Assembly: GCA_950097015.1 (NCBI GenBank) | Contig: CATNEN010000025.1 | Location: 5,518,001 to 5,582,000 of the forward strand | Direction of reading: 5' to 3' | Length of the DNA stretch: 64,000 bases | From: Macrostomum hystrix | Taxonomy: Eukaryota; Animalia; Platyhelminthes | Shown: positions 12,001 to 60,300 of the stretch, one piece after another | Layout: every line of letters begins with the position of its first letter | How positions within the stretch are numbered: position 1 is the first letter of the stretch | Notes under the pieces: model-generated | Seen by the model: the letters and a program-made list of their open reading frames with translations, nothing else | Told to the model about the DNA's origin: nothing | Databases searched by the model: none | Position numbers and translations under genes: made by a program

Positions 12001-15000
12001 AAATCTCTCATTCTCTCACAATCTCTCATTCTCCCACAATCTCTCATTCTCCCACAATCTCTCATTCTCCCACCATCTCTCATTCTCCCACCATCTCTCA
12101 TTCTCCCACCATCTCTCATTCTCTCACAATCTCTCATTCTCCCACAATCTCTCATTCTCCCACAATCTCTCATTCTCCCACAATCTCTCATTCTCCCACA
12201 ATCTCTCATTCTCCCACAATGTATCCTTCTCCCACCACCTCTCATTCTCCCAAAATCTCTCATTCTCCCACCAACTCTCATTCTCCCACAATCTCTCATT
12301 CTCCCACAATCTCTCATTCTCCCACAATCTCTCATTCTCCCACCATCTCTCATTCTCCCACCATCTCTCATTCTCCCACCATCTCTCATTCTCCCACAAT
12401 CTCTCATTCTCCCACCATCTCTCATTCTCCCACAATCTCTCATTCTCCCACCATCTCTCATTCTCCCACCATCTCTCATTCTCCCACCATCTCTCATTCT
12501 CCCACAATCTCTCATTCTCCCACCATCTCTCATTCTCCCACCATCTCTCATTCTCCCACCATCTCTCATTCTCCCACCATCTCTCATTCTCCCATAATCT
12601 CTCATTCTCCCACCATCTCTCATTCTCCCACAATCTCTCATTCTCCCACCATCTCTCATTCTCCCACAATCTCTCATTTTTCCACCATCTCTCATTCTCC
12701 CACAATGTATCCTTCTCCCACAATGTATCCTTCTCCCACAAGCTCTTATTTTCCCACAATATCTCATTCTCCCACCATCTCTCATTCTCCCACGATCTCT
12801 CATTTTCCCACAATCTCTCATTCTCCCACAATCTCTCATTCTCCCACCATCTCTCATTCTCCCACAATGTATCCTTCTCCCACAATGTATCCTTCTCCCA
12901 CAATCTCTCATTCTCCCACAATCTCTCATTCTCCCACCATCTCTCATTCTCCCACAATCTCTCATTCTCCCACAATCTCTCATTCTCCCACAGTCTCTCA
13001 TTTTCCCACCATTTCTCATTCTCCCACAATCTCTCATTCTCCCACAATCTCTCATTCTCCCACAATCTTTCATTCTCCCACCATCTCTCATTCTCCCACA
13101 ATCTCTCATTCTCCCAAAATCTCTCATTCTCCCACAATCTCTCATTCTCCCACAATCTCTCATTCTCCCACAATCTCTCATTCTCCCACAATCTCTCATT
13201 CTCCCACAATCTCTCATTCTCCCACCATCTCTCATTCTCCCACCATCTCTCATTCTCCCACCATCTCTCATTCTCTCACAATCTCTCATTCTTCCACAAT
13301 CTCTCATTCTCCCACAATCTCTCATTCTCCCACAATGTATCCTTCTCCCACCATCTCTCATTCTCCCAAAATCTCACATTCTCCCACCATCTCTCATTCT
13401 CCCACAATCTCTCATTCTCCCACAATCTCTCATTCTCCCACCATCTCTCATTCTCCCACCATCTCTCATTCTCCCACAATCTCTCATTCTCCCACCAACT
13501 CTCATTCTCCCACAATGTATCCTTCTCCCACAATCTCTCATTCTCCCACAATCTCTCATTCTCCCACAATCTCTCATTCTCCCACCATCTCTCATTCTCC
13601 CACAATCTCTCATTCTCCCACAATGTATCCTTCTCCCACCATCTCTCATTCTCCCAAAATCTCTCATTCTCCCACCAACTCTCATTCTCCCACAATCTCT
13701 CATTCTCCCACAATCTCTCATTCTCCCACAATCTCTCATTCTCCCACAATCTCTCATTCTCCCACAATCTCTCATTCTCCCACCATCTCTCATTCTCCCA
13801 CAATCTCTCATTCTCCCACCATCTCTCATTCTCCCACCATCTCTCATTCACCCACAATCTCTCATTCTCCCACAATCTCTCATTCTCCCACAATCTCTCA
13901 TTCTCCCACCATCTCTCATTCTCCCACAATCTCTCATTCTCCCACCATCTCTCATTCTCCCACCATCTCTCATTCTCCCACCATCTCTCATTCTCCCACC
14001 ATCTCTCATTCTCCCACCATCTCTCATTCTCCCAAAATCTCTCATTCTCTCACAATCTCTCATTCTCCCACAATCTCTCATTCTCCCACAATCTCTCATT
14101 CTCCCACCATCTCTCATTCTCCCACCATCTCTCATTCTCCCACCATCTCTCATTCTCTCACAATCTCTCATTCTCCCACAATCTCTCATTCTCCCACAAT
14201 CTCTCATTCTCCCACAATCTCTCATTCTCCCACAATCTCTCATTCTCCCACAATGTATCCTTCTCCCACCACCTCTCATTCTCCCAAAATCTCTCATTCT
14301 CCCACCAACTCTCATTCTCCCACAATCTCTCATTCTCCCACAATCTCTCATTCTCCCACAATCTCTCATTCTCCCACCATCTCTCATTCTCCCACAATCT
14401 CTCATTCTCCCACCAACTCTCATTCTCCCACAATGTATCCTTCTCCCACCAACTCTCATTCTCCCACAATGTATCCTTCTCCCACAATCTCTCATTCTCC
14501 CACAATCTCTCATTCTCCCACAATCTCTCATTCTCCCACAATCTCTCATTCTCCCACAATCTCTCATTCTCCCACAATCTCTCATTCTCCCACAATCTCT
14601 CATTCTCCCACCATCTCTCATTCTCCCACCATCTCTCATTCACCCACAATCTCTCATTCTCCCACAATCTCTCATTCTCCCACAATCTCTCATTCTCCCA
14701 CCATCTCTCATTCTCCCACAATCTCTCATTCTCCCACCATCTCTCATTCTCCCACCATCTCTCATTCTCCCACCATCTCTCATTCTCCCACCATCTCTCA
14801 TTCTCCCACCATCTCTCTTTCTCCCAAAATCTCTCATTCTCTCACAATCTCTCATTCTCCCACAATCTCTCATTCTCCCACAATCTCTCATTCTCCCACC
14901 ATCTCTCATTCTCCCACCATCTCTCATTCTCCCACCATCTCTCATTCTCTCACAATCTCTCATTCTCCCACAATCTCTCATTCTCCCACAATCTCTCATT

Positions 15001-18000
15001 CTCCCACAATCTCTCATTCTCCCACAATCTCTCATTCTCCCACAATGTATCCTTCTCCCACCATCTCTCATTCTCCCACAATCTCTCATTCTCCCACCAT
15101 CTCTCATTCTCCCACCATCTCTCATTCACCCACAATCTCTCATTCTCCCACAATCTCTCATTCTCCCACAATCTCTCATTCTCCCACCATCTCTCATTCT
15201 CCCACTATCTCTCATTCTCCCACCATCTCTCATTCTCCCACCATCTCTCATTCTCCCACCATCTCTCATTCTCCCACCATCTCTCATTCTCCCACCATCT
15301 CTCATTCTCCCAAAATCTCTCATTCTCTCACAATCTCTCATTCTCCCACAATCTCTCATTCTCCCACAATCTCTCATTCTCCCACCATCTCTCATTCTCC
15401 CACCATCTCTCATTCTCCCACCATCTCTCATTCTCTCACAATCTCTCATTCTCCCACAATCTCTCATTCTCCCACAATCTCTCATTCTCCCACAATCTCT
15501 CATTCTCCCACAATCTCTCATTCTCCCACAATGTATCCTTCTCCCACCATCTCTCATTCTCCCAAAATCTCTCATTCTCCCACCAACTCTCATTCTCCCA
15601 CAATCTCTCATTCTCCCACAATCTCTCATTCTCCCACAATCTCTCATTCTCCCACCATCTCTCATTCTCCCACAATCTCTCATTCTCCCACCAACTCTCA
15701 TTCTCCCACAATGTATCCTTCTCCCACAATCTCTCATTCTCCCACAATCTCTCATTCTCCCACAATCTCTCATTCTCCCACAATCTCTCATTCTCCCACA
15801 ATGTATCCTTCTCCCACCATCTCTCATTCTCCCAAAATCTCTCATTCTCCCACCAACTCTCATTCTCCCACAATCTCTCATTCTCCCACAATCTCTCATT
15901 CTCCCACAATCTCTCATTCTCCCACAATCTCTCATTCTCCCACAATCTCTCATTCTCCCACCATCTCTCATTCTCCCACAATCTCTCATTCTCCCACCAT
16001 CTCTCATTCTCCCACCATCTCTCATTCTCCCACAATCTCTCATTCTCCCACAATCTCTCATTCTCCCACAATCTCTCATTCTCCCACCATCTCTCATTCT
16101 CCCACCATCTCTCATTCTCCCACAATCTCTCATTCTCCCACAATCTCTCATTCTCCCACAATCTCTCATTCTCCCACAATCTCTCATTCTCCCACAATCT
16201 CTCATTCTCCCACAATCTCTCATTCTCCCACAATCTCTCATTCTCCCACAATCTCTCATTCTCCCAAAATCTCTCATTCTCCCACCAACTCTCATTCTCC
16301 CACAATCTCTCATTCTCCCACAATCTCTCATTCTCCCACAATCTCTCATTCTCCCACAATCTCTCATTCTCCCAAAATCTCTCATTCTCCCACCAACTCT
16401 CATTCTCCCACAATCTCTCATTCTCCCACAATCTCTCATTCTCCCACAATCTCTCATTCTCCCACAATCTCTCATTCTCCCACCATCTCTCATTCTCCCA
16501 CAATCTCTCATTCTCCCACCATCTCTCATTCTCCCACAATCTCTCATTCTCCCACCATCTCTCATTTTCCCACCAGCTCTCATTCTCCCACAATGTATCC
16601 TTCTCCCACAATCTCTCATTCTCCCACAATGTATCCTTCTCCCACAATCTCTCATTCTCCCACAATGTATCCTTCTCCCACAATCTCTCATTCTCCCACA
16701 ATCTCTCATTCTCCCACAATCTCTCATTCTCCCACAATCTCTCATTCTCCCACCATCTCTCATTCTCCCACAATCTCTCATTCTCCCACCATCTCTCATT
16801 TTCCCACCAGCTCTCATTCTCCCACAATGTATCCTTCTCCCACAATCTCTGATTCTCCCACAATGTATCCTTCTCCCACAATCTCTCATTCTCCCACAAT
16901 GTATCCTTCTCCCACAATCTCTCATTCTCCCACAATCTCTCATTCTCCCACAATCTCTCATTCTCCCACCATCTCTCATTGTCCCACCATCTCTCATTCT
17001 CCCACAATCTCTCATTCTCCCACCATCTCTCATTCTCCCACCATCTCTCATTCTCCCACCATCTCTCATTCTCCCACAATGTATCCTTCTCCCACCATCT
17101 CTCATTGTCCCACCATCTCTCATTCTCCCACAATCTCTCATTCTCCCACCATCTCTCATTCTCCCACCATCTCTCATTCTCCCACCATCTCTCATTCTCC
17201 CACCATCTCTCATTCTCCCACCATCTCTCATTCTCACACAATGTATCCTTCTCCCACAATCTCTCATTCTCCCACAATCTCTCATTCTCCCACCATCTCT
17301 CATTCTCCCACCATCTCTCATTCTCCCACCATCTCTCATTCTCCCACCATCTCTCATTCTCCCACCATCTCTCATTCTCCCACCATCTCTCATTCTCACA
17401 CAATGTATCCTTCTCCCACCATCTCTCATTCTCCCACAATCTCTCATTCTCCCACAATCTCTCATTCTCCCACAATCTCTCATTCTCCCACAATCTCTCA
17501 TTCTCCCACAATCTCTCATTCTCCCACCATCTCTCATTCTCCCACAATCTCTCATTCTCCCACCATCTCTCATTCTCCCACAATCTCTCATTCTCCCACA
17601 ATGTATCCTTCTCCCACCATCTCTCATTCTCCCACCATCTCTCATTTTCCCACAATCTCTCATTCTCCCACAATGTATCCTTCTCCCACAATCTCTCATT
17701 CTCCCACAATGTATCCTTCTCCCACCATCTCTCATTCTCCCACCATCTCTCATTTTCCCACCAGCTCTCATTCTCCCACAATGTATCCTTCTCCCACAAT
17801 CTCTCATTCTCCCACAATCTCTCATTCTCCCATAATCTCTCATTCTCCCACAATCTCTCATTCTCCCACAATCTCTCATTCTCCCACAATCTCTCATTCT
17901 CCCACAATCTCTCATTCTCCCACAATCTCTCATTCTCCCACCATCTCTCATTCTCCCACAATCTCTCATTCTCCCACAATCTCTCATTCTCCCACAATCT

Positions 18001-21000
18001 CTCATTCTCCCACAATCTCTCATTCTCCCACAATCTCTCATTCTCCCACAATCTCTCATTCTCCCACCATCTCTCATTCTCCCACAATCTCTCATTCTCC
18101 CACAATCTCTCATTCTCCCACAATCTCTCATTCTCCCACAATCTCTCATTCTCCCACAATCTCTCATTCTCCCACAATCTCTCATTCTCCCACAATCTCT
18201 CATTCTCCCACCATCTCTCATTCTCCCACAATGTATCCTTCTCCCACAATCTCTCATTCTCCCACCATCTCTCATTCTCTCACAATCTCTCATTCTCCCA
18301 CCAACTCTCATTCTCCCACAATCTCTCATTCTCCCACAATCTCTCATTCTCCCACAATCTCTCATTCTCCCACAATCTCTCATTCTCCCACCATCTCTCA
18401 TTCTCCCACAATCTCTCATTCTCCCACAATCTCTCATTCTCCCACAATCTCTCATTCTCCCACAATCTCTCATTCTCCCACAATCTCTCATTCTCCCACA
18501 ATCTCTCATTCTCCCACAATCTCTCATTCTCCCACAATCTCTCATTCTCCCACAATCTCTCATTCTCCCACAATCTCTCATTCTCCCACAATCTCTCATT
18601 CTCCCACAATCTCTCATTCTCCCACAATCTCTCATTCTCCCACAATCTCTCATTCTCCCACAATCTCTCATTCTCCCACCATCTCTCATTCTCCCACAAT
18701 GTATCCTTCTCCCACAATCTCTCATTCTCCCACCATCTCTCATTCTCTCACAATCTCTCATTCTCCCACCAACTCTCATTCTCCCACAATCTCTCATTCT
18801 CCCACAATCTCTCATTCTCCCACCATCTCTCATTCTCCCACAATGTATCCTTCTCCCACAATCTCTCATTCTCCCACCATCTCTCATTCTCCCACAATGT
18901 ATCCTTCTCCCACCATCTCTCATTCTCCCACAATCTCTCATTCTCCCACAATCTCTCATTCTCCCACAATCTCTCATTCTCCCACAATCTCTCATTCTCC
19001 CACCATCTCTCATTCTCCCACAATGTATCCTTCTCCCACAATCTCTCATTCTCCCACAATCTCTCATTCTCCCACAATCTCTCATTCTCCCACAATCTCT
19101 CATTCTCCCACAATCTCTCATTCTCCCACAATCTCTCATTCTCCCACAATCTCTCATTCTCCCACAATCTCTCATTCTCCCACAATCTCTCATTCTCCCA
19201 CCATCTCTCATTCTCCCACAATGTATCCTTCTCCCACCATCTCTCATTCTCCCACAATCTCTCATTCTCCCACCATCTCTCATTCTCCCACAATCTCTCA
19301 TTCTCCCACAATCTCTCATTCTCCCACCATCTCTCATTCTCCCACAATCTCTCATTCTCCCACAATCTCTCATTCTCCCACAATCTCTCATTCTCCCACA
19401 ATCTCTCATTCTCCCACCATCTCTCATTCTCCCACAATCTCTCATTCTCGCACCATCTCTCATTCTCCCAAAATCTCTCATTCTCCCACCATCTCTCATT
19501 CTCTCACAATCTCTCATTCTCCCACCATCTCTCATTCTCCCACAATCTCTCATTCTCCCACAATCTCTCATTCTCCCACAATCTCTCATTCTACCACAAT
19601 CTCTCATTCTCCCACCATCTCTCATTCTCCCACAATGTATCCTTCTCCCACAATCTCTCATTCTCCCACAATCTCTCATTCTCCCACAATCTCTCATTCT
19701 CCCACAATCTCTCATTCTCCCACAATCTCTCATTCTCCCACCATCTCTCATTCTCCCACAATCTCTCATTCTCCCACAATCTCTCATTCTCCCACAATGT
19801 ATCCTTCTCCCACCATCTCTCATTCTCCCACAATGTATCCTTCTCCCACAATCTCTCATTCTCCCACAATCTCTCATTCTCCCACAATCTCTCATTCTCC
19901 CACCATCTCTCATTCTCCCACAATGTATCCTTCTCCCACAATCTCTCATTCTCCCACCATCTCTCATTCTCTCACAATCTCTCATTCTCCCACCAACTCT
20001 CATTCTCCCACAATCTCTCATTCTCCCACAATCTCTCATTCTCCCACCATCTCTCATTCTCCCACAATGTATCCTTCTCCCACAATCTCTCATTCTCCCA
20101 CCATCTCTCATTCTCCCACAATGTATCCTTCTCCCACCATCTCTCATTCTCCCACAATCTCTCATTCTCCCACAATCTCTCATTCTCCCACAATCTCTCA
20201 TTCTCCCACAATCTCTCATTCTCCCACCATCTCTCATTCTCCCACAATGTATCCTTCTCCCACAATCTCTCATTCTCCCACAATCTCTCATTCTCCCACA
20301 ATCTCTCATTCTCCCACAATCTCTCATTCTCCCACAATCTCTCATTCTCCCACAATCTCTCATTCTCCCACAATCTCTCATTCTCCCACAATCTCTCATT
20401 CTCCCACAATCTCTCATTCTCCCACCATCTCTCATTCTCCCACAATGTATCCTTCTCCCACCATCTCTCATTCTCCCACAATCTCTCATTCTCCCACCAT
20501 CTCTCATTCTCCCACAATCTCTCATTCTCCCACAATCTCTCATTCTCCCACCATCTCTCATTCTCCCACAATCTCTCATTCTCCCACAATCTCTCATTCT
20601 CCCACAATCTCTCATTCTCCCACAATCTCTCATTCTCCCACCATCTCTCATTCTCCCACAATCTCTCATTCTCGCACCATCTCTCATTCTCCCAAAATCT
20701 CTCATTCTCCCACCATCTCTCATTCTCTCACAATCTCTCATTCTCCCACCATCTCTCATTCTCCCACAATCTCTCATTCTCCCACAATCTCTCATTCTCC
20801 CACAATCTCTCATTCTCCCACAATCTCTCATTCTCCCACCATCTCTCATTCTCCCACAATGTATCCTTCTCCCACAATCTCTCATTCTCCCACAATCTCT
20901 CATTCTCCCACAATCTCTCATTCTCCCACAATCTCTCATTCTCCCACAATCTCTCATTCTCCCACCATCTCTCATTCTCCCACAATCTCTCATTCTCCCA

Positions 21001-21180
21001 CAATCTCTCATTCTCCCACAATGTATCCTTCTCCCACCATCTCTCATTCTCCCACAATGTATCCTTCTCCAACAATCTCTCATTCTCCCACCATCTCTCA
21101 TTCTCCCACAATCTCTCATTCTCCCACAATCTCTCATTTTCCCACCATTTCTCATTCTCCCACAATCTCTCATTCTCATT
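9061..21180. repeat. 18-bp satellite (CTCCCACAATCTCTCATT)n, about 670 monomers, with internal block duplications
   Basis: 18-bp period throughout. Variant monomers CTCCCACCAT... and CTCCCACAATGTATCCTT. Rare variants recur at +2628 (10113/12741) and +1224 (19447/20671). Confidence 0.98.
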
Positions 21181-21610
21181 CTTCTTTGGCTATAATCATT
21201 AGCCGCAGATGTTTCCTTTAGTTACTGTAGGATTTCCTCGCCAAGCATCAAATGGAATTTTAACTACAAACGAAAACAGGATAAGGAATGGCGACTCCTG
21301 TGCTCTGCGTTTAAGCCAAGGCAGCAGCAGCTACGGGGGGCAGATAAGAGATCACAGCGATGTTTCAGCTTGTGTTGACGTCATTCAAAGTGGACAAGAA
21401 TTCTTGGTCGCTACGGTTACGCCTAATTATATTTATTTTTCTTTTATACCTCATAGTGAGGCAGTTGTTCCGGCTTTCCTAGCGATCCTAACTTGAACCG
21501 CGGTGGCAAAAAGGTAGCCTAAAATATCAGAAACTTCTGTCTTTCTTTCGTAAAGAAAACAAGGCTTCAAAATTATTTCTGCATTTCGCTAGAAATAGTA
21601 GCTAGACTGT

Positions 21611-43461: not shown

Positions 43462-46400
43462 GTAAGTTATGTATAATGCATCATGTTTTGACTTATTAAT
43501 ATTCTAATGAATGACTGACCTACTCTACATAAAACGAATATTTGCGTTACCCGGTAAGGCTTCGCAAAAAAGACGGCGCCCCAACCGTTGAAGAGAAGAA
43601 GCAGGCTTGCCATCTGCTGGCCGAGAGTATCCTTGGCGAGGATCTAACTGGCTCGCAAGACTACGGAGCCGTACTCAGGCCTGTGATTGAGACACTGTGC
43701 AATCTGTGCGACGATGCTAACGATTCTGTGCGCAATCTAGCCAATGAAACACTCAATGCCGTTATGAAAGACATCAGCCTGCACCTGTACCGGCACCTGA
43801 CTGTTGCGTTTGCCAAGGTGAGAGAAAAAAACATCATTTTATTTGTTGCTCAACTACGAATTAAAATGTTTTTGTCTGAGCTAAACTCTATGAATTGTCG
43901 AAAGTATTTAACTAAGCGATAGTTTTAGACAGGGCGAGAGTATTAGATTAGGCGAGAATAGTAGATAGAGCGAGAGTTGTAGATAGGGCGAGAGTAGTAG
44001 ATTGGGCGAGAGTTGTAGATAGGGCGGGAGTAGTAGATTGGGCGAGAGTAGTAGATAGGGCGAGAGTATTAGATTGGGCGAGAGTTGTAGATAGGGCGAG
44101 AGTAGTAGATATGGCGAGAGTAGTAGATAGGGCGAGAGTAGTAGATAGGGCGAGAGTAGTAGATAGGGCGAGAGTAGTAGATTGGGCGAGAGTAGTAGAT
44201 TGGGCGAGAGTAGTAGATAGGGCGAGAGTAGTAGATAGGGCGAGAGTAGTAGATTAGGCAAGAGTAGTAAGTAGATTAGGCGAGAGTAGTAGATAGTGCG
44301 AGAGTATTAGATTAGGCGAGAGTAGTAGATAAAGCGACAGTATTAGATTAGGCGAGAATAGTATGTAGGGCGAGAGTATTAGATTAGGTGAGAATAGTAT
44401 GTAGGGCGAGAGTAGTAGATAGGGCGAGACTATTAGATTAGGCGAGAATAGTAGATAGGGCGAGAGTTGTAGATAGGGCGAGAGTAGTAGATTGGGCGAG
44501 AGTTGTAGATAGGGCGAGAGTAGTAGATTGGGCGAGAGTAGTAGATAGGGCGAGAGTATTAGATTAGGCGAGAATAGTAGATAGGGCGAGAGTAGTAGAT
44601 AGGGCGAGAGTAGTAGATCGGGCGAGAGTAGTAGATAGGGCGAGAGTAGTAGATAGGCGAGAGTATTAGATTAGGCGAGAGTAGTAGATAGGGCGAGACT
44701 ATTAGATTAGGCGAGAATAGTATGTAGGGCGAGACTATTAGATTAGGCGAGAATAGTATGTAGGGCGAGAGTATTAGATTAGGCGATAATAGTATGTAGG
44801 GCGAGAGTATTATATTAGGCGATAATAGTATGTACGGCGAGAGTATTATATTAGGCGATAATAGTATGTAGGGCGAGAGTATTAGATTAGGCGAGAATAG
44901 TATGTAGGGCGAGAGTAGTAGATTAGGCGAGAGTAGTAGATAGGCCGAGAGTAGTAGATAGGCCAAGAGTAGTAGATTAGGCAAGAGTAGTAAGTAGATT
45001 AGGCGAGAGTAGTAGATAGGGCGAGAGTATTAGATTAGGCGAGAATAGTATGTAGGGCGAGAGTATTAGATTAGGCGAGAATAGTATGTAGGGCGAGAGT
45101 AGTAGATAGGGCGAGATTATAATATTAGGCGAGAGTAAAAAAAAAATGGCGACATTACTTAAGACATTCTCGTAGAAGCGTGTGTGTAGCATTACAAACT
45201 TGACTTCGAATTCCCCCCCTTGAAACTCCGCTAACCCCAAAAGGTGATGCAACGCGACGGAATCCAGCCGCGCGTAGTGAAAGCCGCCCTGTGCCGATTC
45301 GCCAGTCTAGTCAGTTACATTCTGCCATCCAAGGCGCCCGACTATGCCAGATTTGTCTTCCCCATCATTGTCCGCCTATTGCAAGCCGGGGAAGCTGTTC
45401 AGGCTGAATTAGTTCGCCAATTGCCGCCAATTTGTCGGGCATTGGTGCCTGCGGATAGGGAGATTAATCTGCGCACCTACCTGACTGACTGCCTAGCCGC
45501 GCTAGATAATCCTTCGCCGTTTGTTCGCCGTACGGCTGCCACCTTTGTAGCCGAGATCTGTACCAATGCGCAGACGCCGCGATTGCTGGCTTGGACTCTG
45601 GAACAGCTCAGCTGTCGCCGGCCCGGCCATCTGCTGGCACTGCGCCTTCTGGCTCCGCTGCTAACAGCGGGTGTCGATTCTACAAGCGCAGACGAAGATC
45701 TCGCCTGTCGCCTATTGGCCGGTACCGCGGTTGCCGTGGCAACCGTTGACCGGGTGACAGCCAGTCCGGCTCTGGAGGCCATGCGAGCCCTGCTGGACTG
45801 CGCTCCGGCCGGCCTTGTTGCTAGGCGCCTTATGCGACCCGGTGGTTTAAACGTCGCTGCAACCGTTGTCATGGCAACGCCAACGCCGGTTTTTTCCGAA
45901 GCTCCGATTTCTTTGGCATCGCGCGAACAATCGACGCAGCCCTCAATCGAGTCTGTCGCCGGCGTGGTCGACGAACTGGCCATCGCCGTCAGCGTCGATA
46001 AGCCGCCGACTCCGACATCGACACCAATGTTGACGCCGGCGCCTTTATCGGCGGTGTCGCTAACGACTGCTGCGTCAGACGCCGGCACCGAGGAATCGTC
46101 TAGCGAAGCCGACGTCTCCGGCTCTGGCCCTGGAGGCGTCGATGACGATGTCGACGATGAAGATGCTACCGGCGGTGAAAGTAGCGACGACGCTTTGGCC
46201 ACCGACGAAGCGGAAGCCGACGCAGACGAAGCTGCCGCGGCATCGGCAGCTGCAGCCGACTCAGTTACCCTGCTAGCTGAAGCTGAAACTTCCGCCTCCG
46301 CTGCCGATCAACTGCCAACCCTGCAGCCGGATCTAGTCTCCTCCTTGGCCGCCGACGCCAATCTTCGACCCGTTGATTATCTATTTCGCGTACTTGCAAA

Positions 46401-49400
46401 CCGTTATCTGTTGCCTGGCAACGCTGCCGGCGTAGCTCACGACGAGCGCTGCGTAAAAGTACATTTGAAAATGGACGCCATTGGCTGCCTGAGCCGTCTA
46501 GTGTCCTGGGATCCATCCCTGCTTCGCCGACCGGTGCTGCCGAATTCACCTCAGCGGGCCGATGATATTCTGTCCCTGTTGGCTCACTCGGACGCCCAGT
46601 TAGTTGGCCGCACAGCTCAGTTGCTATGCTCTTACCTGTCCGCCTCCGTTGCTGACGGTAAAATTCCACGAGATGAAGCCGATGTCGAAATTGGCCGATT
46701 GCTGGCGCTCATTGAGTCTGGGACACCACTGGTTGCTAAGGAGGTGAGTTCTTCGCAACAGTATCAGAATCCCAATCGATCAGAATCCCAATCGATCAGA
46801 ATCCCAATCGAACAGAATCCCAATTGATCAGAATCCCAATTAATCAGAATCCCAATCAATCAGAATCCCAATCGATCAGAATCCCAATTAATCAGAATCC
46901 CAATTAATCAGAATCCCAATCGAACGGAATCCCAATCGATCAGAATCAACTAGAATCCTCAAATTAAAACTCGCCTTTTTCAGGTGGTTGGCGCCCTGTC
47001 CATCTGCCTGCCCCAGTTGGGGATTCGCTTTCCGGCCCTGCTTGATCGCGTCTCTCGCGCCCTACCATTGGCTTTGAAGTCCAGCTACGCTCTGCTAACA
47101 GCCGAACTGTGCTCCCTATTATCTGGCGTGCCGTTTCACCTGCTGCCAGACGATCTGAGGCCCTGGTGCCTGGAGACGGCCGTTGGCCTCCTTGGCCATT
47201 CAGATCGTCAGGTGCAATCAGCAGCCTGTCATCTATTGGTGCGAGCGGTAGCCAATGTACACGACTCAACTAAACCGGCCTCCCTAATTGGTTGTCAACT
47301 GCAGCAACAACAGCAGCCGCAGCCGCAGCAATATTTATTTAGCTTTCATCAGCAACAGCAGCATCAGAAGCAGAGTCGAGCAGTTCAAACCGCCACCGCG
47401 GCTGGTCTGTCTAGCGTTCTCGGCTGTCTAATGACCAAATTTTACTCGTGCACAGATCAGGCATTCATGTCTGGCGCAGCGGCCGTATTGCATCGCCTAA
47501 CAGTGGCCTATCCGCCCGTGTCCCATCCGGCCGAATGGCGAGTTGGCCCGCTAGTGCCAGTCGGCGCCGAGCGTTGGCAATCGTTTTCAAAAGTTTGGCC
47601 AACCGGCCCGGGTCCGCAGCAGCCTCCGGAGTTGTTGCACTATTGCGTTCAACTGCTGTCGCTTCCTCTGCCATTGCAGGTAAAAATAATTAAAATTTTA
47701 GAAAACGGCCCTTTTTAGGTCGTTTTTTCTGGAATAGTCACATGTTAGAAAAATATAGGGAATTGTTTTATATATTCTTTGATAGCCACAAGTGTAAGGA
47801 CTTTATTTCATTACTCGATTAAGTTTTGTATATATTAGAAGTGATATTGAATCATGAAACATTACTAGCAGTTAACATATTCAAGGCGAAGACAAATGAT
47901 ATCGTTTGAGAAGAGAAAGTTTGTATATATGTTTATTGTCCTACTGTCAGTAGAATAAAAAACCTAGCAATCAAAATAGGTTAAGTAAAAACGGCCCCTT
48001 TAAGGCTGTTTGCGATATTGTGAATCCTGTTCAATTTGTAGTATTTATTTCATCCTTTTCTAATGCCAGTGGAATAAAACAAGCAGTAACTGAATCAAAA
48101 ATTTTTAAAGCGGCACTTTTGACACACAACTTCGTTGGACCAGATGTACAGCCAGTAGCGCTTCCAAATTCTGTGTACAACTTTCCGGTCCATGGACTGG
48201 GGTTGCCGCCACACCTACGTATTAATTATTTTCCAGCTAATGCTGTCAGTCGTTTCACAGCTGGGTAAACTGGAGCGTTAGAAAATTAAAGGGAAATTAT
48301 GACTCGAACTTGCGACGTCTCGGCTAAAAATCTTAAGCTTATACCACTGGGCTACGACCTTCATTACCGGATGATACATAATACTTAGCAGATCCGCATT
48401 TAAATCAAACTAACGCATTGCAGACCCACTCAGACCTGCTGGCTGCCATAGCTAATCTAGTTCGAGGCGCAATTTATCACGGCCTCCGTCCAGTGCTTGA
48501 CGATCATCCCAAAGAGCCCTGGCCAGCCCTGGCTAATCGAGCCATGCCGGACCTGTGCTCCGCTCTGTTGCATCATCTGCTGCGCCTATTGGGCGCATTT
48601 CAATTATCTATAGCCACCGCTCAGACGCACAATGCGTCTTCTAGTAGCAGCAGCAGTCCGGCTAAGCAGCAACGTCTGGCAGGTCGACCCGGCGTCGGTG
48701 GCGGCGTTGGCGGAGCCAGCGGACTTACTAGCATTGTGGATGCAACTTCAACTTCTAAGCAGCATCAGCAGCATGACACAGGCGGTATAGTGGGAATCTC
48801 TCTAGGCTTAGCCGAAGATCGGCATCAACAGCAGCACCAGCAGCAGTATCAGCAGCAGCATCAGCAGCAGCTGTATGCTCGCATGCAGGAATCTGTTAGG
48901 AAAGCCTATAGAAGTTATCGCACTTCCTCCGAGTCCACTAGCGGAGCTGGCGGCGACGCTCGGGTGTGCCAATTGGCCCGATCCGCTCTAGACTGTTTGG
49001 CTGCGCTGTTAAATGGAGCTCACAGGTTTGTTGATAAGTTTTTTTAAAGATTTTTTAGATACCTAGTTAAATATCTTTCCAATTTTCTACGAAAATGTTT
49101 TCCAGGTTTATTCATTATTTTTTCCGGGTTTTGTCGTTATTTTTCCGGGTTTAATGGTTTTTTCCGGTTTTAAGCATTTTTTCTTGAGAATTTCGTCGCT
49201 GTTATTCAGATTTTTCGTTGCTAATAATATGTTTTGTCGGATGCTATAAAATTTATCTTCCACCAAACGCAGAATTTATATGCAACGGCTGTTTAGTGTC
49301 TTATGAGGTCACCTAACTATCCACTTCTCGCTGTTTCCCTGCAACTTTTAGATCGGATCTGCCACTGGACCTGACCAAATCTCTTCTGGCTCAGCTGCGC

Positions 49401-52400
49401 GAATTGCTCCGCCTTCGGCCGACCACATCGAAGTGCATCGGCCTAGTCAACGCACTGATGCGAGCCATCTTCGGCTTGAATTTGGCTGCGTTTCATTCTG
49501 CTCCGACTTCGTCGGCGGCCGGCACACCGTCTGGCTCAATGCCGACGCCGACAACATTGTCTGCGATGTCAACAGCTCAGATGCAGCAGCAGACCTCAGC
49601 AAAGGTATTTTTCATGCTTCAGGCCTTTTGAGTACAGTTGCTGGAAGTCGAAACATCTCATTGTTCAATGAATCTTCAATGTCCGATTCCTTCTCACCTT
49701 GGAATGACCGATTCCTTCTCACCTTGGAATGACTGATTCCTTCTCACCTTGGAATGACCGATTCCTTCTCACCTTGGAATGACCGATTCCTTCTCACCTT
49801 GGAATGACCGATTCCTTCTCACCTTGGAATGACCGATTCCTTCTCATCCTACAATGACCGATTCCTTCTCATCCTACAATGACCGATTCCTTCTCATCCT
49901 TCAATTACCGATTACTTCTCATCCTTCAATGACCGAATCCTTCTCATCCTACAATGACCGATTCCTTCTTATTCTTCAATGACCGATTCTTTCTCATCCT
50001 TCAATGACCGATTCCTTCTCATCCTACAATGACCGATTCCTTCTCATTCTTCAATGACCGATTCCTTCTTATTCTTCAATGACCGATTCCTTCTTATTCT
50101 TCAATGACCGATTCCTTCTCATTCTTCAATGACCGATTCCTTCTTATTCTTCAATGACCGATTCTTTCTCATCCTTCAATGACCGATTCCTTCTCATCCT
50201 ACAATGACCGAATCCTTCTCATTCTTCAATGACCGATTCATTCTCATCCTTCAATGACCGATTCCTTCTCATCCTACAATGACCGATTACTTCTCATTCT
50301 TCAATGACCGATTCCTTCTCATTCTTCAATGACCGATTCCTTCTCATCCTACAATGACCGAATCCTTCTCATTCTTCAATGACCGATTCATTCTCATCCT
50401 TCAATGACCGATTCCTTCTCATCCTACAATGACCGATTACTTCTCATCCTTCAATGACCGATTCCTTCTTATCCTTCAATTACCGATTACTTCTCATCCT
50501 ACGATGGCCGATTCCTTCTCATCCTTCAATGACCGATTCCTTCTCATTCTTCAATGACCGATTCTTTCTCATTCTTCAATGACCGATTCCTTCTCATCCT
50601 ACAATGACCGATTACTTCTCATCCTTCAATGACCGATTCCTTCTTATCCTTCAATTACCGATTACTTCTCATCCTACGATGGCCGATTCCTTCTCATCCT
50701 TCAATGACCGATTCCTTCTCATTCTTCAATGACCGATTCTTTCTCATTCTTCAATGACCGATTCCTTCTCATCCTACAATGACCGATTCATTCTCATCCT
50801 TCAATGACCGATTCCTTCTCATCCTACAATGACCGATTACTTCTCATCCTTCAATGACCGATTCCTTCTTATCCTTCAATTACCGATTACTTCTCATCCT
50901 ACGATGGCCGATTCCTTCTCATCCTTCAATGACCGATTCCTTCTCATTCTTCAATGACCGATTCCTTCTCATCCTACAATGACCGATTCATTCTCATCCT
51001 TCAATGACCGATTCCTTCTCATTCTTCAATGACCGATTCATTCTCATCCTTCAATGACCGATTCCTTCTTATCCTACAATGACCGATTCATTCTCATCCT
51101 TCAATGACCGATTCCTTCTCATCCTACAATGACCGATTCCTTCTCATCCTACAATGACCGATTCATTCTCATCCTTCAATGACCGATTCCTTCTCACCTT
51201 GGAATGACCGATTCATTCTCATCATTCAATGACCGATTCCTTCTCACCTTGGAATGACCGATTCATTCTCATCATTCAATGACCGATTCCTTCTCATCTT
51301 ACAATGACCGATTCATTCTCATCCTTCAATGACCGACGCTTTCGCATTGTGCAGCCGCAGTCGGCAGCTTCCACGCCAACGCCGCCTGGAGCTGCAGCAA
51401 CAACGCCCACAACATCAGCTTCGATTCGTTCGCCTTCGCCCTCGCCGTCGACCAGTTCGCTGACATCTATCGGCGGTCGAGGTCGCTATCCCAGCCTGAC
51501 CCAGTCGCTGGTGCTGGAGCCTCTATTAGCCGCATCAGCCGCGTCTCTGTCTTCTGCCATTGAAGCTTCGTGTTCGTCGTCATCGTCTATGTTGACTTCG
51601 CCGTTGTTATTGCGTCGACCAGCAGCCAAGCAGTTGCTGCAGGACAGATTTCCCAGTCTGGCAGCCAGCTATATTAAACCATTCCAATCTGTTGTGGTGG
51701 CCGCAATGCGAATGTACATGGCTCCGTGCGATCAGGCTAGCCAGGCGGCTGTACTGGACCTATTCTGCACCCTAATGCTATTGGGCACCAACTATTCTAG
51801 TCTGGATAGGCAGTCCACTTTTCTAACTTATCTTTTGCGTCAATTGGAGACCGCGGCCGGTTCTTCTCCGGTTGGTCCGCTAGGCCGGGCGCCGTTGAGG
51901 CCTCTTTTCGCGTTCCTGTGCTCATTGAGCCAGCACGATCCGGGCCTGCTGCCGTCTGCTAAGCTGCTGCAGCTGGCCGACTCACTGCTGGCCGCCGGAT
52001 GGCAGTGTCAGGCGAGTCGTGCTCTCGTTTAGGATATAATGGGATTTTTTGGGGATGTATATAAAAATAGGCAATTCTGCCCCTCTGCAATTCCGCTAAA
52101 TCCTGAGCACACACACGGGTGTGTAAATCTGCCCTGACTTTCTCATCGTCAGGCAGTGTACACTCTCACTGTGCCTTTGAGGTTGGCCCTCAAGTGCGTA
52201 AATTGCACGACAAGCCCCCAAGTCTGTCTGTTCTGTAAGAGGATTTAGGGAAATCTGTCTGTTCTGTATGAGGATTTGGGGAAATCTGTCTATTCTGTAA
52301 GAGGATTTAGGGAAATCTGTCTGTTCTGTAAGAGGATTTAGGGAAATCTGTCTGTTCTGTAAGGGGATTTAGGGAAATCTGTCTGTTCTGTAAGAGGATT

Positions 52401-54302
52401 TAGGAAAGTCTGTCTGTTCTGTAAGAGGATTTAGGGAAATCTGTCTGTTCTGTAAGAGGATTTAGGGAAGTCTGTCTGTTCTGTAAGAGGATTTGGGGAA
52501 ATCTGTCTGTTCTGTATGAGGATTTAGGGAAATCTGTCTGTTCTGTAAGAGGATTTAGGGAAATCTGTCTGTTCTGTAAGAGGATTTAGGGAAATCTGTC
52601 TGTTCTGTAAGAGGATTTAGGGAAATCTGTCTGTTCTGTAAGGGGATTTAGGGAACTCTGTCTGTTCTGTAAGAGGATTTGGGGAAGTCTAGCTGTTCTG
52701 TATTTGGATTTGGGGAAGTCTAGCTGTTCTGTATTTGGATTTGGGGAAATCTAGCTGTTCTGTATTTGGATTTAGGGAAGTCTAGCTGTTCTGTATGGGG
52801 ATTTAGGGAAGTCTAGCTGTTCTGTATTTGGATTTGGGGAAGTCTAGCTGTTCTGTATGGGGATTTAGGGAAGTCTAGCTGTTCTGTATGGGGATTTAGG
52901 GAAGTCTAGCTGTTCTGTATTTGGATTTGGGGAAGTCTAGCTGTTCTGTATTTGGATTTGGGAAAGTCTAGCTGTTCTGTATTTGGATTTGGGGAAGTCT
53001 AGCTGTTCTGTATTTGGATTTGGGGAAGTCTAGCTGTTCTGTGTGGGGATTTAGGGAAGTCTAGCTGTTCTGTATGGGGATTTAGGGAAGTCTAGCTGTT
53101 CTGTATGAGGATTGGGATTTGGGGATATTTGGCTATGGTGTGCATGGGAAATTTCGAGAAGGAAATCGACCGATCAGAGGAATGATTTTGGAAGAAGTTA
53201 GCTTGTTTCCTAGAGGAGTTTCACGAATACCAAAGTCTTAATAAAGTTGCGTAGTGATTCTTCTTCAGCAGCATTTGATTAAAGCCGACCCACCCTCCCT
53301 CAGGACGCTCTCAGTCCAATCGTTGACGACTTATTCGGCGGTCGTCCATCCACTGCGGCTGCAACGCCCGAAGCTCACCAGCTGCTCGAGTCACAGCGCG
53401 ATTTTGCCGCCAACCTGTTGCTACGCCAGCCGGCGAATTGTTTAGCCCTGCTGCCGGCTCCGCTGCATCTGAGTAGGCGACAGTCGGACGAGCGCTGGCT
53501 CCGATTGTCCCGCAGCGTTGCCGACGCTCTGCTTCAAGCTTTGAGCACTGGCTCGTTGCCTGTTGATCGATTAGATCAGCTGCGCTCTCTCGACACTGTC
53601 CTAGCCGCTTGCTCCCCAGCAGCTTTGCGGCCTACAGATGTACCTTTGGGCCTGCTATTCTTGCCAATGTTGGACAACGCGTCTGGCTCCGTGATTATGT
53701 TTGGCCGCTGGCTAGCCGCTGTGCTGGCTGGTGTTAGACTGCTGCTGGCTCAGCCAGAGGAGGCTGTACTGCCCCGCCTGGCTGCGCTAGAGGTGCCGCC
53801 GCCTCCTGTGCCGATTGTGCCAGCTAGTGCGCCGGCTACATCGTCGGCTAGCTCGCCAGCTGCGGCGTCTCCGGATGAGCAGACTTTGGGCATCCAGCTC
53901 GTGTCTGTGCTAGCTGCAGCTCTAGAGGAACTACTGACATCGTCGGCTTCGGCATCTTCGTCAACGTCAGTCGTCGCTCAGTCGTCCGGACCTCTGGCTG
54001 ATTCGGACGCGGATGTGTCGACATCCCCGACGGTCGCCGACAGCTTTCTAGCCGACGGTGCCACCCTGCTGTTGCTGTACCTGTGCCAGCTCACTTCAGC
54101 ATATAGACGGCTGGGCGCTTTCTTCTGCCGCCGACCGGACATTGTGGCCGCATTGAATAGCCGGGTTGCCCAGTTGGTCACTACACAGCCGCGTCTGGTT
54201 ATCGTTTATTGCTACCTGCTAACACGGTGAGACTGAGAACAATAGGAGTGATAGATTGTCTCTCTATTCACTCCCGCATCCTCACAGTCTCTCACCCTCT
54301 CA

Positions 54303-54333
<31 letters not shown>

Positions 54334-57300
54334 TCTAACCCTGTCTCACCCTCTCACCCTCTCACCCTCTTACTCTCTCACCCTCTAACCCTGTCTCACC
54401 CTCTCACTCTCTCACCCTGAAATTCAATGGGCAGTGGCCTTTCTCCTCTCTCCCGCTCTCTCTCCCTCTCTCTCAGGCCAGCACCGGCGTCTCGTACGAC
54501 CGAGTCAGTGCCACGGAGTTGAGTGAGTGTGGATTGAGTTGCGGGGCGCTGCCGAATCGATTACGATATGTTGAGATTGGAAGCTGGATTTGAACAAGCG
54601 CCTATAGCCTAATGGCTAGAGCGCTAGGCTAGACTCTACTGATGAGCTCCAAAAAGAGCGAAACGCGTCTGGAGTTGCCTTGGTTCGAATCCTGATTTCA
54701 ATTTTTTCGATACATATCGGAATCGATTCCAACATTAGAATTTTGAAATTCAATGGGCAGTGTCCTCTCTCCTCTCTCCCGCTCTCTCTCTCCCTCTCTC
54801 CCTCTCTCACTCTCTCACTCTCTCACCCTCTCACTCTCTCACTCTCTCACCCTCTCACTCTCTCACTCTCTCACCCTCTCACTCTCACACTCTCTCACTC
54901 TCTCACCCTCTCACTCTCTCACTCTCTCACCCTCTAACCCTGTCTCACCCTGTCTCACCCTCTTACTCTCTCACCCTCTAACCCTGTCTCACCCTCTCAC
55001 TCTCTCCCCCTGTCTCACCCTGTCTCACCCTGTCTCACCCTGTCTCACCCTGTCTCACCCTCTCATTTCTCTCACTTCTCTCTCAACCTCACCCTCTCGC
55101 CCTAGTAATATTCCAATCTAACACGTGTGCTCGGAATGTTGGCTAGCTGTGCCTAGAACCGCGTGCATTGGCCCAACCAATTATCTACCTGCGATATGTA
55201 CATCGATATGCCAATCGATAGTTGCACCACCCCCCGGTTTGCTCAAATAATTTTAGCAATTTTAGCACCACCCCCGGTTTGCACCCCCTCTCTCACCTGT
55301 CTCACCGTCTCACCTCTCTTATCCTCTCACATTCTCTCACACTCACGCATTCTAACACTATCAGCCTCTCACACCCCTCTTGCTCTCTTCCCTGACGAAA
55401 AACTTAACAAATATGCGAAGTCTCGGTAAATTTATATAAATCGTCTCTTTCTTGTTTGTTGCAAGTGCCGTTGGAGGCGCTTTCCTCTCTCTCCCTCTCT
55501 CTCACCCTCCCTCACTCTCTCACCCTGTCTCACACTGTCATCCTCATTTATAATCTTCTTCACCCTCAATATACCTCTTATTATTTTTTCAACACATATA
55601 GGCGGCTAGTGTTGTTGATTTCGCCCTGTTTACTGCAGCCAATTATATATTATTTTCAATGCCATCCATCAGATGGGGCTACTTCGAAGAGGACTGGTGG
55701 CTGCGCATGCTTCGGCCGTCAGATCCGGCCCACGATTACAATGCCCAGCTGTGCAAACGCGGCGCCCTCTGCGTCCTGGCCGACTGGACCGCGTCTGATA
55801 ACGACGGCGAGAAATTCTCCTGGCTAATACCGAATTTCCTGTCGGACATTGTTGTGAACAGTCGACGCTACGAAGAGCTGCACCGGCTGGTGTCCGCCGT
55901 GCACAGAAACCGATTGGCCTCGGAAATGCTGGTCAACTCGGCCAGCTTAAACTGGGACGCTTTCCGCGGCCAGCCTGTGGCGCAGAAGCTGCTGCTGGCC
56001 TGCTGCGAAGGCCTTCACCTGGACGCCTCCGGCCTGCTTGTGCGATTTCTGTTCGAAAGGTGAGAAATTCATTTGCTTACTGCTTGATTCCTGAATTGCC
56101 TTCTGTCTGTAAATTTCCTGAGTTGTGTCTGTAATTCGCTGAGTTTCGGGTCTGTAATATACCCTGAGTTACATGTCTGTAATTCCCTGAGTTTCGGGTC
56201 TGTAATTCCCTGAGTTTCGGGTCTGTAATTCCCTGAGTTACATGTCTGTAATTCCCTGAGTTTCGGGTCTGTAATTCCCTGAGTTTCATGTCTCTAATTC
56301 CCTGAGTTACATGTCTGTAATTCCCTGAGTTACAGGTCTGTAATTCCCTGAGTTACATGTCTGTAATTCCCTGAGTTACATGTCTGTAATTCCCTGAGTT
56401 ACAGGTCTGTAATTCTCTGAGCTTCGGGTCTGTAATTTAGGAATGATTGATTCCTTAAATGAAATGGAATTGAAGCCCCGCTACCCCCATCCCAACAATG
56501 GCCAGGTTCATCTTCAGCTCCCCAAGCGGTGCCCTGCTGGCTGTTCGCCGACGCGCCGAATCTGTCGCGATCAGCCGGCTCAACATGCTCGAAGGTGCCG
56601 GCGGAGCCGCAACCGCCGCCTTCTCATTCGACGACGCCACCGACGCTTTGCGTCGTGCGCAGCAACGTCGACTCCCGGCACTGACAGCTGCTCTCAAGCG
56701 TTACCTTGGCAACCGGGGAGGCGGCGGTTCTCGTTCCTCCGCCTCCGCCGCCGCCGCCGCTGCCGCCGCTTCTCAACCAGTGGCCGTAGCTCGCAATGCC
56801 GACCCGCTAAGTTCGGGTCGGGACGCCGACGAAGACGACACCGATGCGGCTGCTGAAGCTCGCGCAGAAGCTGACTCCAGGGCCTGGTTCGCCAGCTGGA
56901 CAGCCGACTGGTGCCTCGGCAGCGAATCGGCCGGATCCATCGGCGGCGCCACTGGCGTTGCTGGCGCCCGGCTTCTGTGGCACCTGGACTCAGCCGCTTT
57001 GGCTAAAGTAAGACACTACTCACGACTTAATCTGGGATCAAGGATCTGGGATCAAGGATCTGGGATCAAGGATCTGGGATCAAGGATCTGGGATCAAGGA
57101 TCTGGGATCAAGGATCTGGGATCAAGGATCTGGGATCAAGGATCTGGGATCAAGGATCTGGGATCAAGGATCTGGGATCAAGGATCTGGGATCAAGGATC
57201 TGGGATCAAGGATCTGGGATCAAGGATCTGGGATCAAGGATCTGGGATCAAGGATCTGGGATCAAGGATCTGGGATCAAGGATCTGGGATCAAGGATCTG

Positions 57301-60300
57301 GGATCAAGGATCTGGGATCAAGGATCTGGGATCAAGGATCTGGGATCAAGGATCTGGGATCAAGGATCTGGGATCAAGGATCTGGGATCAAGGATCTGGG
57401 ATCAAGGATCTGGGATCAAGGATCGTAATTCGCAACTATCCTTTTGCACCAACCCAGGTTATGTCCGACCCGAAATTCAGTCTGCACCATTTGGAGTCCT
57501 GTATTCGTCTAGCTTCATCTTCGTCTGCCGCGTCCTCGTTATCGACTGGTCGTCAGCGAAGGCCTGCGTCGGCGACGTCGGCATCTGGGGGCATCCAGGG
57601 CCAAGGCCAGCTGATGGCCGCTTGCCAAGCTGCACTTTTAAAGCGTCTGTTAAAATCGTACGGTTCAGAGTCTGGCGATTCGGCCGCGTCCGCAGCCGCC
57701 ACCGGTGCTGCCGCCGCCGCTGCCGGCTCAGACGTTGAAGTTGACATTCCCGACGCCGAGACTTCTTCGGCTGTGCGCTGGAGTCTGGGCGCCTGCTGGC
57801 TGGCGCTGCTGTCGGCGCGTCCGGTGCCAACCGACCTTCCAGACGCTGACATCGCCAGGCCTCTTTGGCGCCTAGTAGTTCGCCTGCTAGCCGACAGCGC
57901 CACTCCGGGCGCCAGGTCGCGAACTCGGGACAGCGTTCGCCTTGCCCTGGCCTGCTTCCGACGGCCCGGCCTGGCCGCTTGCCTGTCCGAGGACGCTCGC
58001 CTGGCCGGTCGTCTAGTCGCCGCCGTTGCCGACCTGGCCGATTCCACCCGATGCACCGATCCGTGCTTGGCCGCCGCAGACGCTGTTGCCGCGGCGGCGG
58101 CCAGCGTTGCCGACGCAGGTTCGCCCGAGCGTCGACTTCGCCGGTTAATCGCCTTGGCAGCCGGCGACAGTGGGCCGCACGGCCTGGACGAGGATCTCCT
58201 GCTGCTGTGCGTGGCTCTGGCCAGGCTGCCGCACTTTAACGACTCCCTGAGGGTGCCGGAAGAGGCGGCTGTTCAGGATGGAGTTCACGTTGAATTGGGC
58301 GCCCTAAAGGATCCGCGCGTGCTGCAGGAGGTTGGGACAATGCGCTGAAATCACAGGGATTTCGATTACACTGCTCAAATATATCCCACAGCTCATACAG
58401 TACAGACACTGCTCAAATATATCCCACAGCTGATACAGTACAGACACTGCTCAAATATATCCCACAGCTCAGACAGAACAAACAGACACTGCTCAAATTA
58501 TCCCGCAAGTAAATTGTCCTCTTATCACGCTTATCCCGCAGGTGGTGACCCGAGGCGCCCTCCTAGGCTGGACCTCTCGCCAGCAGTTCGAAGAGACCTG
58601 GGTCTCCCTAATCAGCGTCCTGAATCCGGCCGTCGGCTTCGACGAGCCTCAGCGACTCGATCCCGAGGACGAAGTTGAAAGTACCCAGTGCAAACTACTG
58701 GCTGTGCGAGCTATCAGTCGGTTGCTATTGGATACGCTCACAGATTGGCCAGGCGATCCAGTGAGAAGGCAGCTCTATCATTGGCCAAGGCCGTTAGCCG
58801 CTCCTAGATTGAATTGTCCGCCAGATCCGTGAGTAGCAGCCACTGGAACTGGCATATATATAAGATTTAGATGCAAATGTTTTGCATCTAAGCAGTCGGG
58901 AGTTCGAATCTCAACTCAAGGAAAACTTGTAATTTCTATCATTTAGCAAGAGCATAAATTCCAGCATTAGAATTTGGTCGGTTAGAAATTTGCTCGCATG
59001 TTGCAGCCTCCCAACAATTAGAAGCATCGCGCAAAATCTGCGGCACTGCCACTGGCTGTCAATTTGTTATATTTATGAAAATTCAAGTAAATTTAAGTAA
59101 TTTCCAATTTCTTAAATATTAATTAGTATAACTTAACAGGTGATTTTGGTGTTTGATTTTTTCTGCGTGTAACTATTTAAATTCTTTGTTTATGTTTTGT
59201 ATATTTATAATTCGATTTTCTTTACACAAATTCGACTAAATATAATCCAATAGTAAGCGTTTAACTAACACCAGTGAATAGTATCTACCAACTATATTAT
59301 TATATTAAAAAAAATAAAAAACAATAACTTTCAGGTTTGCCGATGTGCGTTGCTGCGTTCTACAGCCAATCATGAATAAGCTCATGAGGTAGCTTTGTTA
59401 AAGTGGCGTTTTTAGACAACATTTTTGTTGCTAAGTTATCTATTTAAAGTAGAGAGTGATTTTCTTAGATTTAGTAGAAAATACTAGAATCTCAACATTT
59501 TTTCTTGCATATGAGAAGCTCTGATTATTTTAATTGAATGGCCTGTCCATACAAGACTGTCCATTTGAATATTAATTCATTTAGAATCTCACTTTTGTTT
59601 AATATTAGCGTTACTGTTCTGATTAAGTTACATTATTTCTTGTTCCATTTAGTTTTGCGTCTATTCAAATGACGAAAGTGTTAAAATTATCATTATTATT
59701 TTCATAAATTTTGATCTTTCACTAATTACCTGCAAATTTCATAATTTTCTCTTCTTAAATAAGCATTGAAAAATGACGAAATCTAAACTACATTCGTTTC
59801 TATAATAAAACAAAAACCCGTAAAGAAAAGAGAATTAGAAAAATGAGTTTGTCTTGTTATAACAAAATAGAATTTGCTATTCATAGGACTACGGGCTATC
59901 TTCCCGCTAAAAAATAGGGATGTTTCTTTGGGTGATTCCAGTTGGAATCTGCGGTGTTTCCAGAAAAAGAAACAGCCGAACGCTGGAAACATACCAATCG
60001 GATGATTCCATGCTTTGTAGTAGAAAAGCATGGAATTCTATCTATCCAACTGGGCGTTTTCTCGGTGCTTCTTGGTGGCGAAATGGAATCACCCAAAGAA
60101 TCCTCCAGTTCGGAAGATTCAATGCTCAGAAACCGCCGGGAATCGCCCGTAAATAAGTCTGGTTGTCCCATGGGCCACTGGTTCGGGTGATTCTTCGGTG
60201 GTTTCAGCACAATTTACGGTTCCATCGGCTGCTTCCTGGGTGGTTTCTTTAACTCTTGCGAGATAGGGGGGATTTTGGTAGATTCCACTCCTATTTTGCA

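Follow-up and report, generated by a model that had tools for sequence, protein, structure and literature searches.

What is a hammerhead ribozyme doing between the two promoter boxes of a transfer RNA (tRNA)-like module, and inside an intron of the huntingtin gene? The locus that raises this question lies in a stretch of 64,000 nucleotides of the flatworm Macrostomum hystrix (contig CATNEN010000025.1, positions 5,518,001 to 5,582,000 of the forward strand), hereafter called the window and counted from its first letter. An initial annotation had seen an A box, a complete type I hammerhead, a B box and a run of six T (T6) at 54598-54707, and all of these are indeed present there on the plus strand. 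It had also proposed that they make up a self-contained RNA polymerase III (Pol III) unit, and here our analysis points elsewhere. We consider it probable that the locus is a solitary copy, about 1.17 units long, of a non-autonomous ribozyme retroelement of the kind represented by Sm-alpha and the animal retrozymes without long terminal repeats (non-LTR retrozymes), inserted in a microsatellite of the huntingtin intron. What the sequence itself shows is the anatomy of the motifs, a defined unit length and terminal redundancy, together with a strong fold and the sense position in the intron.

The hammerhead and its tRNA-like frame

The ribozyme occupies 54626-54680 on the plus strand, as seen from an Rfam HH9 match and from pairing checked by hand, and its predicted cut falls after C54669. 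Stem I consists of an outer part of 4 bp (AGGC 54626-54629 with GCCT 54677-54680), a 2-nt bulge (T54630, A54631) and an inner part of 7 bp with two G-U pairs (54632-54638 with 54670-54676). The core CTGATGA (CUGAUGA in the RNA) at 54639-54645 leads into stem II, which pairs GCTC with GAGC over 4 bp (54646-54649 with 54656-54659) and carries the loop CAAAAA. GAAA at 54660-54663 and the GTC triplet at 54667-54669 complete the motif. Helix III is a palindrome, ACGCGT at 54663-54668, in which A15.1-U16.1 and C15.2-G16.2 would pair around a 2-nt loop. The hammerhead core is intact at 15 of 15 positions, including the G10.1-C11.1 pair and the GUC triplet.

A scan with all 4227 Rfam families gave this as the sole hammerhead in the window. 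The Hammerhead_HH9 model (RF02275) aligns end to end with 54621-54692 and scores 40.1 bits, with E = 5.4e-9 on 351 nt and E = 9.8e-7 on the whole window against all families. The score stays below the curated gathering score of 52, which leaves a default Rfam scan empty. Over CUGAUGAGCUCCAAAAAGAGCGAAAC the ribozyme and the HH9 consensus are identical; the deficit in score arises from stem I and from a helix III that is shorter by 5 nt. As a hammerhead (Rfam clan CL00010), the motif is far beyond chance.

Canonical metazoan type I hammerheads have a helix I of about 6 bp, a helix II of 4 bp and a helix III of 1-2 bp with a palindromic loop of 2-4 nt; they cut poorly alone and are active as dimers of two copies (PMC4209133). 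With its 2 bp and 2-nt loop, helix III of the M. hystrix ribozyme cannot close in the monomer, and a 6-bp intermolecular helix is possible instead. A lone transcript of about 110 nt, which had been proposed to cut itself, is hence not expected to do so efficiently as a monomer, judging from related ribozymes (PMC4209133). Plain minimum-energy cofolding of two copies gave pairing via the B-box palindrome and not via helix III. Since this was uninformative, we scored the double-hammerhead structure explicitly. For 54626-54680 this dimer reaches -38.1 kcal/mol, compared with 2 x -15.0 kcal/mol for monomers with stems I and II only, and is near the unconstrained dimer minimum of -38.6 kcal/mol. 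The ACGCGT duplex in isolation amounts to -8.9 kcal/mol. The B box itself is near-palindromic at 54682-54691, where GGUUCGAAUC self-pairs using G-U pairs, and for this reason plain cofolding predicts transcript dimers through B boxes; this may point to a further site of dimerisation or be an artefact of the folding.

Around the ribozyme, the tRNA-like frame begins with a tRNA-derived 5' head at 54598-54625 on the plus strand. Its A box, TAGCCTAATGG at 54605-54615, fits the pattern TRGCNNARTGG exactly and is followed by TAGAGCGC, which resembles the 3' side of a D arm; a hairpin of 4+5 bp is predicted for the head. The B box, GGTTCGAATCC at 54682-54692, is perfect and begins 12 nt past the predicted cleavage site, at a distance of 66 nt from the A box. 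The T6 run at 54702-54707, by its motif a possible Pol III terminator, follows the B box after 9 nt and not after 10, as first counted. In the whole window and on both strands, chance would account for 1.75 matches to the A-box pattern and 0.32 to the B-box pattern. With expected counts this low, two boxes on the right strand, in the right order and at most 45 nt from the ribozyme are not a product of chance. From these box motifs we infer a putative Pol III transcription of the cassette.

In agreement with the initial annotation, the frame is not a functional tRNA. The acceptor strands are unpaired, the T stem pairs at 3 of 5 positions at most (two G-C and one G-U), ARAGORN finds no tRNA, and Rfam gives no tRNA match at E up to 10. 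The hammerhead sits between the boxes in place of the anticodon arm, as had been noticed; the variable loop and the T stem's 5' strand are replaced by it, too. When the ribozyme was deleted in silico with 400 combinations of end points, no tRNA was called at default ARAGORN settings, from which it follows that the ribozyme is not a simple insertion into an intact tRNA. The tRNA calls that relaxed ARAGORN settings did return (introns, lowered thresholds; deletion constructs) were discarded as junk, some of it on the opposite strand and some starting in the flanks.

We also scanned for the A-box-hammerhead-B-box layout elsewhere. None of 41 metagenome loci retrieved with a loose pattern had it; these were mostly chance matches, many of them in tRNA-like sequence. 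Exact 26-mers of the element had no match in viral or prokaryotic genome collections. A chance find of the pattern scan is a hammerhead-like motif (CTGATGA, 5-bp stem II, GAAAC) on the minus strand of metagenome contig Ga0265297_10015416 (L027), at 3842-3911 in locus coordinates; in the reverse complement of the locus, the match starts after about 4767 bases. The strands of its helix III (TCCCTT ... AAGGGA, then GTC) surround a tRNA-T-arm-like hairpin with GGTTCGAATCC.

Repeat unit, fold and host intron

The whole insertion extends over 54418-54800 on the plus strand and comprises about 1.17 units of a hammerhead-bearing repeat of 326 bp, the spacing of its direct repeat. Its right end is approximate because it merges into CT-rich microsatellite. 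The terminal redundancy measures 57 nt. Its left copy (54418-54474) consists of a 22-nt unique motif starting TGAAATTCAATGG and a CT-rich segment, and the right copy (54744-54800) was placed by direct repeat and alignment. The copies are 93% identical, with 2 substitutions and one CT slippage, and in the alignment their homology begins sharply at T54418 and T54744, again with a start-to-start spacing of 326. Between them lies a unique core of 269 nt (54475-54743). The cassette of A box, hammerhead and B box is therefore the middle of a 326-bp repeat unit and not a free-standing gene. The locus holds 1.17 tandem units only, with one ribozyme, and blastn found no second copy of the repeat core in the window. 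The insertion ends in the CT-rich segment, away from the cleavage site, and the cassette is intact in its middle; a circular or multimeric template thus fits better than a cleaved linear monomer.

The predicted fold also reaches beyond the 110-nt stretch. An imperfect duplex of about 45 bp closes the tRNA-like hairpin and the hammerhead, with a left arm at 54554-54597 that contains the complement of the B box and a right arm at 54682-54731 that contains the B box and the T6 run (both on the plus strand). At the core of this duplex is an 18-nt inverted repeat, 54554-54571 with 54712-54729, of 94% complementarity. What had been taken for a self-contained Pol III unit of about 110 nt is hence the centre of a larger unit, whose duplex arms extend past it and include its B box and terminator. 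We assembled a virtual 326-nt unit RNA as the product of two cuts, i.e., 54670-54743 joined to 54418-54669. Folded as a circle, it reaches -124.3 kcal/mol with 72% of its positions paired (z = -5.1; 0 of 100 dinucleotide shuffles as good). Retrozyme RNAs are more than 70% paired (PMC4918200). Folded linearly, the 269-nt core reaches -102.9 kcal/mol (z = -5.64), a value that none of 200 shuffles equalled. The 110-nt stretch alone, with its 5' hairpin and hammerhead stems I and II, is unremarkable for its composition (z = -1.16).

The host intron spans 54228-55700 on the plus strand, its 3' end being approximate. A GT donor at 54228 closes the exon open reading frame (ORF) upstream of the element. 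Pfam finds Htt_N-HEAT domains in the upstream plus-strand ORFs 45244-46827, 46984-47718, 48418-49047 and 51304-52032, and an Htt_bridge domain in the downstream plus-strand ORF 55659-56063. Huntingtin domains on both sides, together with the donor, place the element in sense orientation in a huntingtin intron. Microsatellite of the (CTCTCACC)n type flanks the insertion on both sides, at 54268-54417 and 54765-55085. A spurious ORF of 64 amino acids runs across the element, and a search with its translation found nothing. Among the ORFs tested between about 45 and 61 kb of the window, none showed a reverse transcriptase or endonuclease domain, and this is consistent with a non-autonomous element. 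On the huntingtin pre-mRNA, a single ribozyme with a crippled helix III is probably inert.

Retrozyme-like origin and competing accounts

The nearest likeness in layout is offered by Sm-alpha and Sj-alpha, elements of Schistosoma that resemble short interspersed nuclear elements (SINEs) and were reportedly described by Ferbeyre and co-workers in 1998 and Laha and co-workers in 2000. Like Sm-alpha, the M. hystrix element is a non-coding unit of about 330 bp in which a type I hammerhead is combined with a tRNA-derived A/B-box module, and its hammerhead likewise has a 4-bp helix II with an A-rich 6-nt loop. Sm-alpha, however, has a full tRNA-Gln head, whereas no tRNA is detectable here. In Schistosoma mansoni, the more than 2300 tRNA-Gln-TTG genes and pseudogenes called by tRNAscan-SE are Sm-alpha SINEs, whose complete tRNA-Gln-TTG is recognised by this program in more than 1000 copies (PMC2770079), and schistosome repeats were described as carrying 'a full tRNA' (Cervera et al., PMC4918200). 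The Sm-alpha ribozyme follows the promoter (PMC6765202 Fig. 6G legend; PMC4918200), and after its cleavage the unit RNA carries the promoter at its 3' end (PMC6765202). The literature thus agrees with what the initial annotation had stated, a ribozyme downstream of the tRNA head (PMC2770079, PMC4918200, PMC6765202). The nested layout, also suspected there, is a distinct arrangement: in Sm-alpha the ribozyme lies outside a full tRNA, and here it lies between the boxes and takes the place of the anticodon arm, the variable loop and one half of the T stem. The T6 run after the B box is a further difference from Sm-alpha. The Sm-alpha layout is taken from these secondary sources, and the likeness described here is one of layout. 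Full-text literature searches, whose scope did not extend to Ferbeyre 1998, found no description of a ribozyme nested between A and B boxes.

With the animal non-LTR retrozymes (Cervera and de la Pena 2020, PMC7229834), the element shares a small non-coding unit (170-400 bp in theirs) that holds a single type I hammerhead, extensive self-pairing of the unit RNA and genomic copies of more than unit length. A dimer-dependent helix III is found in amphibian retrozymes, too (PMC7229834). In contrast to the tandem arrays described for these retrozymes, the present locus has 1.17 units and one ribozyme, and its circular RNA is putative. tRNA-type boxes are not described for animal retrozymes outside schistosomes (PMC4918200). 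It has been argued that animal retrozymes descend, as non-autonomous forms, from Penelope-like elements (preprint, bioRxiv 10.64898/2026.07.22.740005).

From these comparisons, we may sketch how the insertion could have arisen as a ribozyme retroelement. Longer-than-unit transcripts would come from tandem copies, from read-through, or possibly from Pol III via the boxes. Two ribozyme copies would pair through the palindrome ACGCGU into a double hammerhead and cut after GUC. The RNA thus released at unit length, bearing a 5'-OH and a 2',3'-cyclic phosphate, would be circularised by tRNA ligase, a step shown for other animal retrozymes (PMC7229834). A reverse transcriptase supplied in trans, most likely a Penelope-like one, would then copy the circle from a nick in the CT/GA microsatellite, and reverse transcription about 1.17 times round the circle would leave the terminal redundancy seen at the locus. 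Penelope-like elements favour microsatellite targets, and the microsatellite flanks of the insertion match this bias (PMC8557442).

Several observations weigh against this origin. The Rfam match was seen in E-value mode, and its score falls short of the cut-off. A single copy of the family is seen in the 64-kb window, and the 57-nt repeat could stem from duplication of the target site, of unusual length, on either side of a 269-bp element. At 2 of about 45 positions outside the microsatellite the redundancy copies disagree, and they are therefore either old or not derived from a single template. Both boxes fall in predicted base-paired regions, so that their preservation could reflect RNA structure and not promoter use. 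The T6 run, in turn, would halt Pol III about 110 nt from the start, and the boxes alone hence cannot yield RNA of unit length or multimers. What part the boxes play is thus the weak point, since unit-length RNA from them would need leaky termination.

The same boxes could also belong to a stand-alone Pol III gene. TFIIIC would bind the boxes, transcription would start near 54595 and stop at T6, and the RNA of about 110 nt would be cut after C54669 into functional pieces of about 72 nt (5') and about 38 nt (3'). An A box that fits the consensus, a perfect B box 66 nt away and T6 9 nt further on are what such a gene would need, and the stretch does fold as a 5' hairpin with hammerhead stems I and II. 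This fold, however, is ordinary for its composition, the cassette forms part of a larger repeated unit, and the enclosing duplex arms reach outside the proposed transcript. Moreover, helix III with its 2-nt loop cannot form in a monomer, and cutting would therefore need two transcripts to meet (PMC4209133). We regard a gene of this sort as unlikely. A solo pseudo-LTR fragment of a Penelope-like element, in which the tRNA-like boxes would be incidental, would account for the insertion site, as Penelope-like elements prefer microsatellites (PMC8557442) and the locus lies in a CT-rich one. Their terminal repeats carry dimer-type hammerheads whose minimal helix III is short and palindromic, as it is here (PMC4209133). 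Yet these minimal hammerheads have a helix II of 7-8 bp and a helix I of 4-5 bp and lack loop-loop elements (PMC4209133), whereas the present hammerhead is canonical, with a 4-bp helix II and loop-bulge elements. No ORF with a reverse transcriptase or GIY-YIG domain occurs among those tested, i.e., no reverse transcriptase-endonuclease ORF lies nearby, and a 326-bp unit with head-to-tail redundancy fits a retrozyme-type repeat. We therefore hold a Penelope-like fragment to be rather improbable.

The sense position in the huntingtin intron, and the fact that the best Rfam match is the intronic family HH9, could also suggest a domesticated ribozyme that regulates processing of the huntingtin pre-mRNA, like the HH9 and HH10 ribozymes of amniotes. 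HH9 comprises conserved intronic hammerheads of amniotes, and the M. hystrix ribozyme has the same core, stem II and loop II, and is intronic and sense as they are. It differs from HH9 in its shorter helix III and other stem I sequence and in being repeat-borne, in contrast to a conserved single-copy locus. Poor cutting is to be expected of one copy whose helix III is crippled, and the locus bears the hallmarks of a recent to middle-aged insertion of a repeat family, which makes domestication highly improbable. As to an orthologous locus, four host ORFs had no exact match and a word-based search with a huntingtin exon was empty, in collections without this species or close kin. A full HMMER search with the N-terminal huntingtin exon gave 35% identity at best, and the four matches looked up came from two beetles, a krill and a paddlefish. 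A SHIPPO-repeat ORF yielded one match, at 41%.

Nested layout and other repeats of the window

Since 1998, blood flukes have been known to possess repeats that combine a ribozyme with a tRNA-type promoter. Small circular retrozyme RNAs have been known in animals since 2020. The element at hand is a broadly known kind of mobile repeat, and its nested box-ribozyme layout is a variant arrangement. In the predicted unit RNA, 12 nt separate the B box from the 5' end, and the A box stands at a distance of about 55 nt from the 3' end; because the ribozyme is nested between the boxes, the predicted cleavage parts one from the other. If this layout is conserved across the family, cleavage would part the promoter halves and ligation would rejoin them. 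This would connect circularisation with Pol III transcription and mobility in a way open to testing, and would provide a second, independent flatworm system for comparison with Sm-alpha.

We may further speculate, with considerable doubt, that the nesting is functional. A hammerhead at the site of a tRNA intron would generate tRNA-like halves that are held together by the duplex and mimic a spliced-tRNA intermediate for RtcB, and cleavage would split the promoter that ligation restores. The ends of such halves, a 2',3'-cyclic phosphate and a 5'-OH, would be the same as those left by the tRNA-splicing endonuclease. If only ligation restores the promoter, only complementary DNAs derived from circles or longer-than-unit RNA would give transcription-competent daughters, and circularisation would be coupled to propagation by a built-in mechanism.

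Other repeats of the window were noted in passing. A fragment resembling the 3' half of a tRNA lies at 8260-8400 on the minus strand, with an anticodon-arm-like stretch, a well-paired T arm and the B box GGTTCGATTCC. A non-tRNA tail comes next, so the fragment is probably a SINE of tRNA origin, with no sequence relationship to the hammerhead element. The huntingtin region is rich in minisatellites (50000-51336, 52220-53113, 56105-56437 and 57030-57424), with arrays of 25 bp x 53, 31 bp x 29, 23 bp x 14 and 14 bp x 28. The last of these is perfectly uniform and lies within an ORF of 616 amino acids (56498-58348) without Pfam match. At 9000-21200, about 12 kb have a GC skew near -0.98, with almost no G on the plus strand. 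ORFs of up to 3960 amino acids in this segment are artefacts of the skew, and the segment is evidently a very long strand-asymmetric tandem array.

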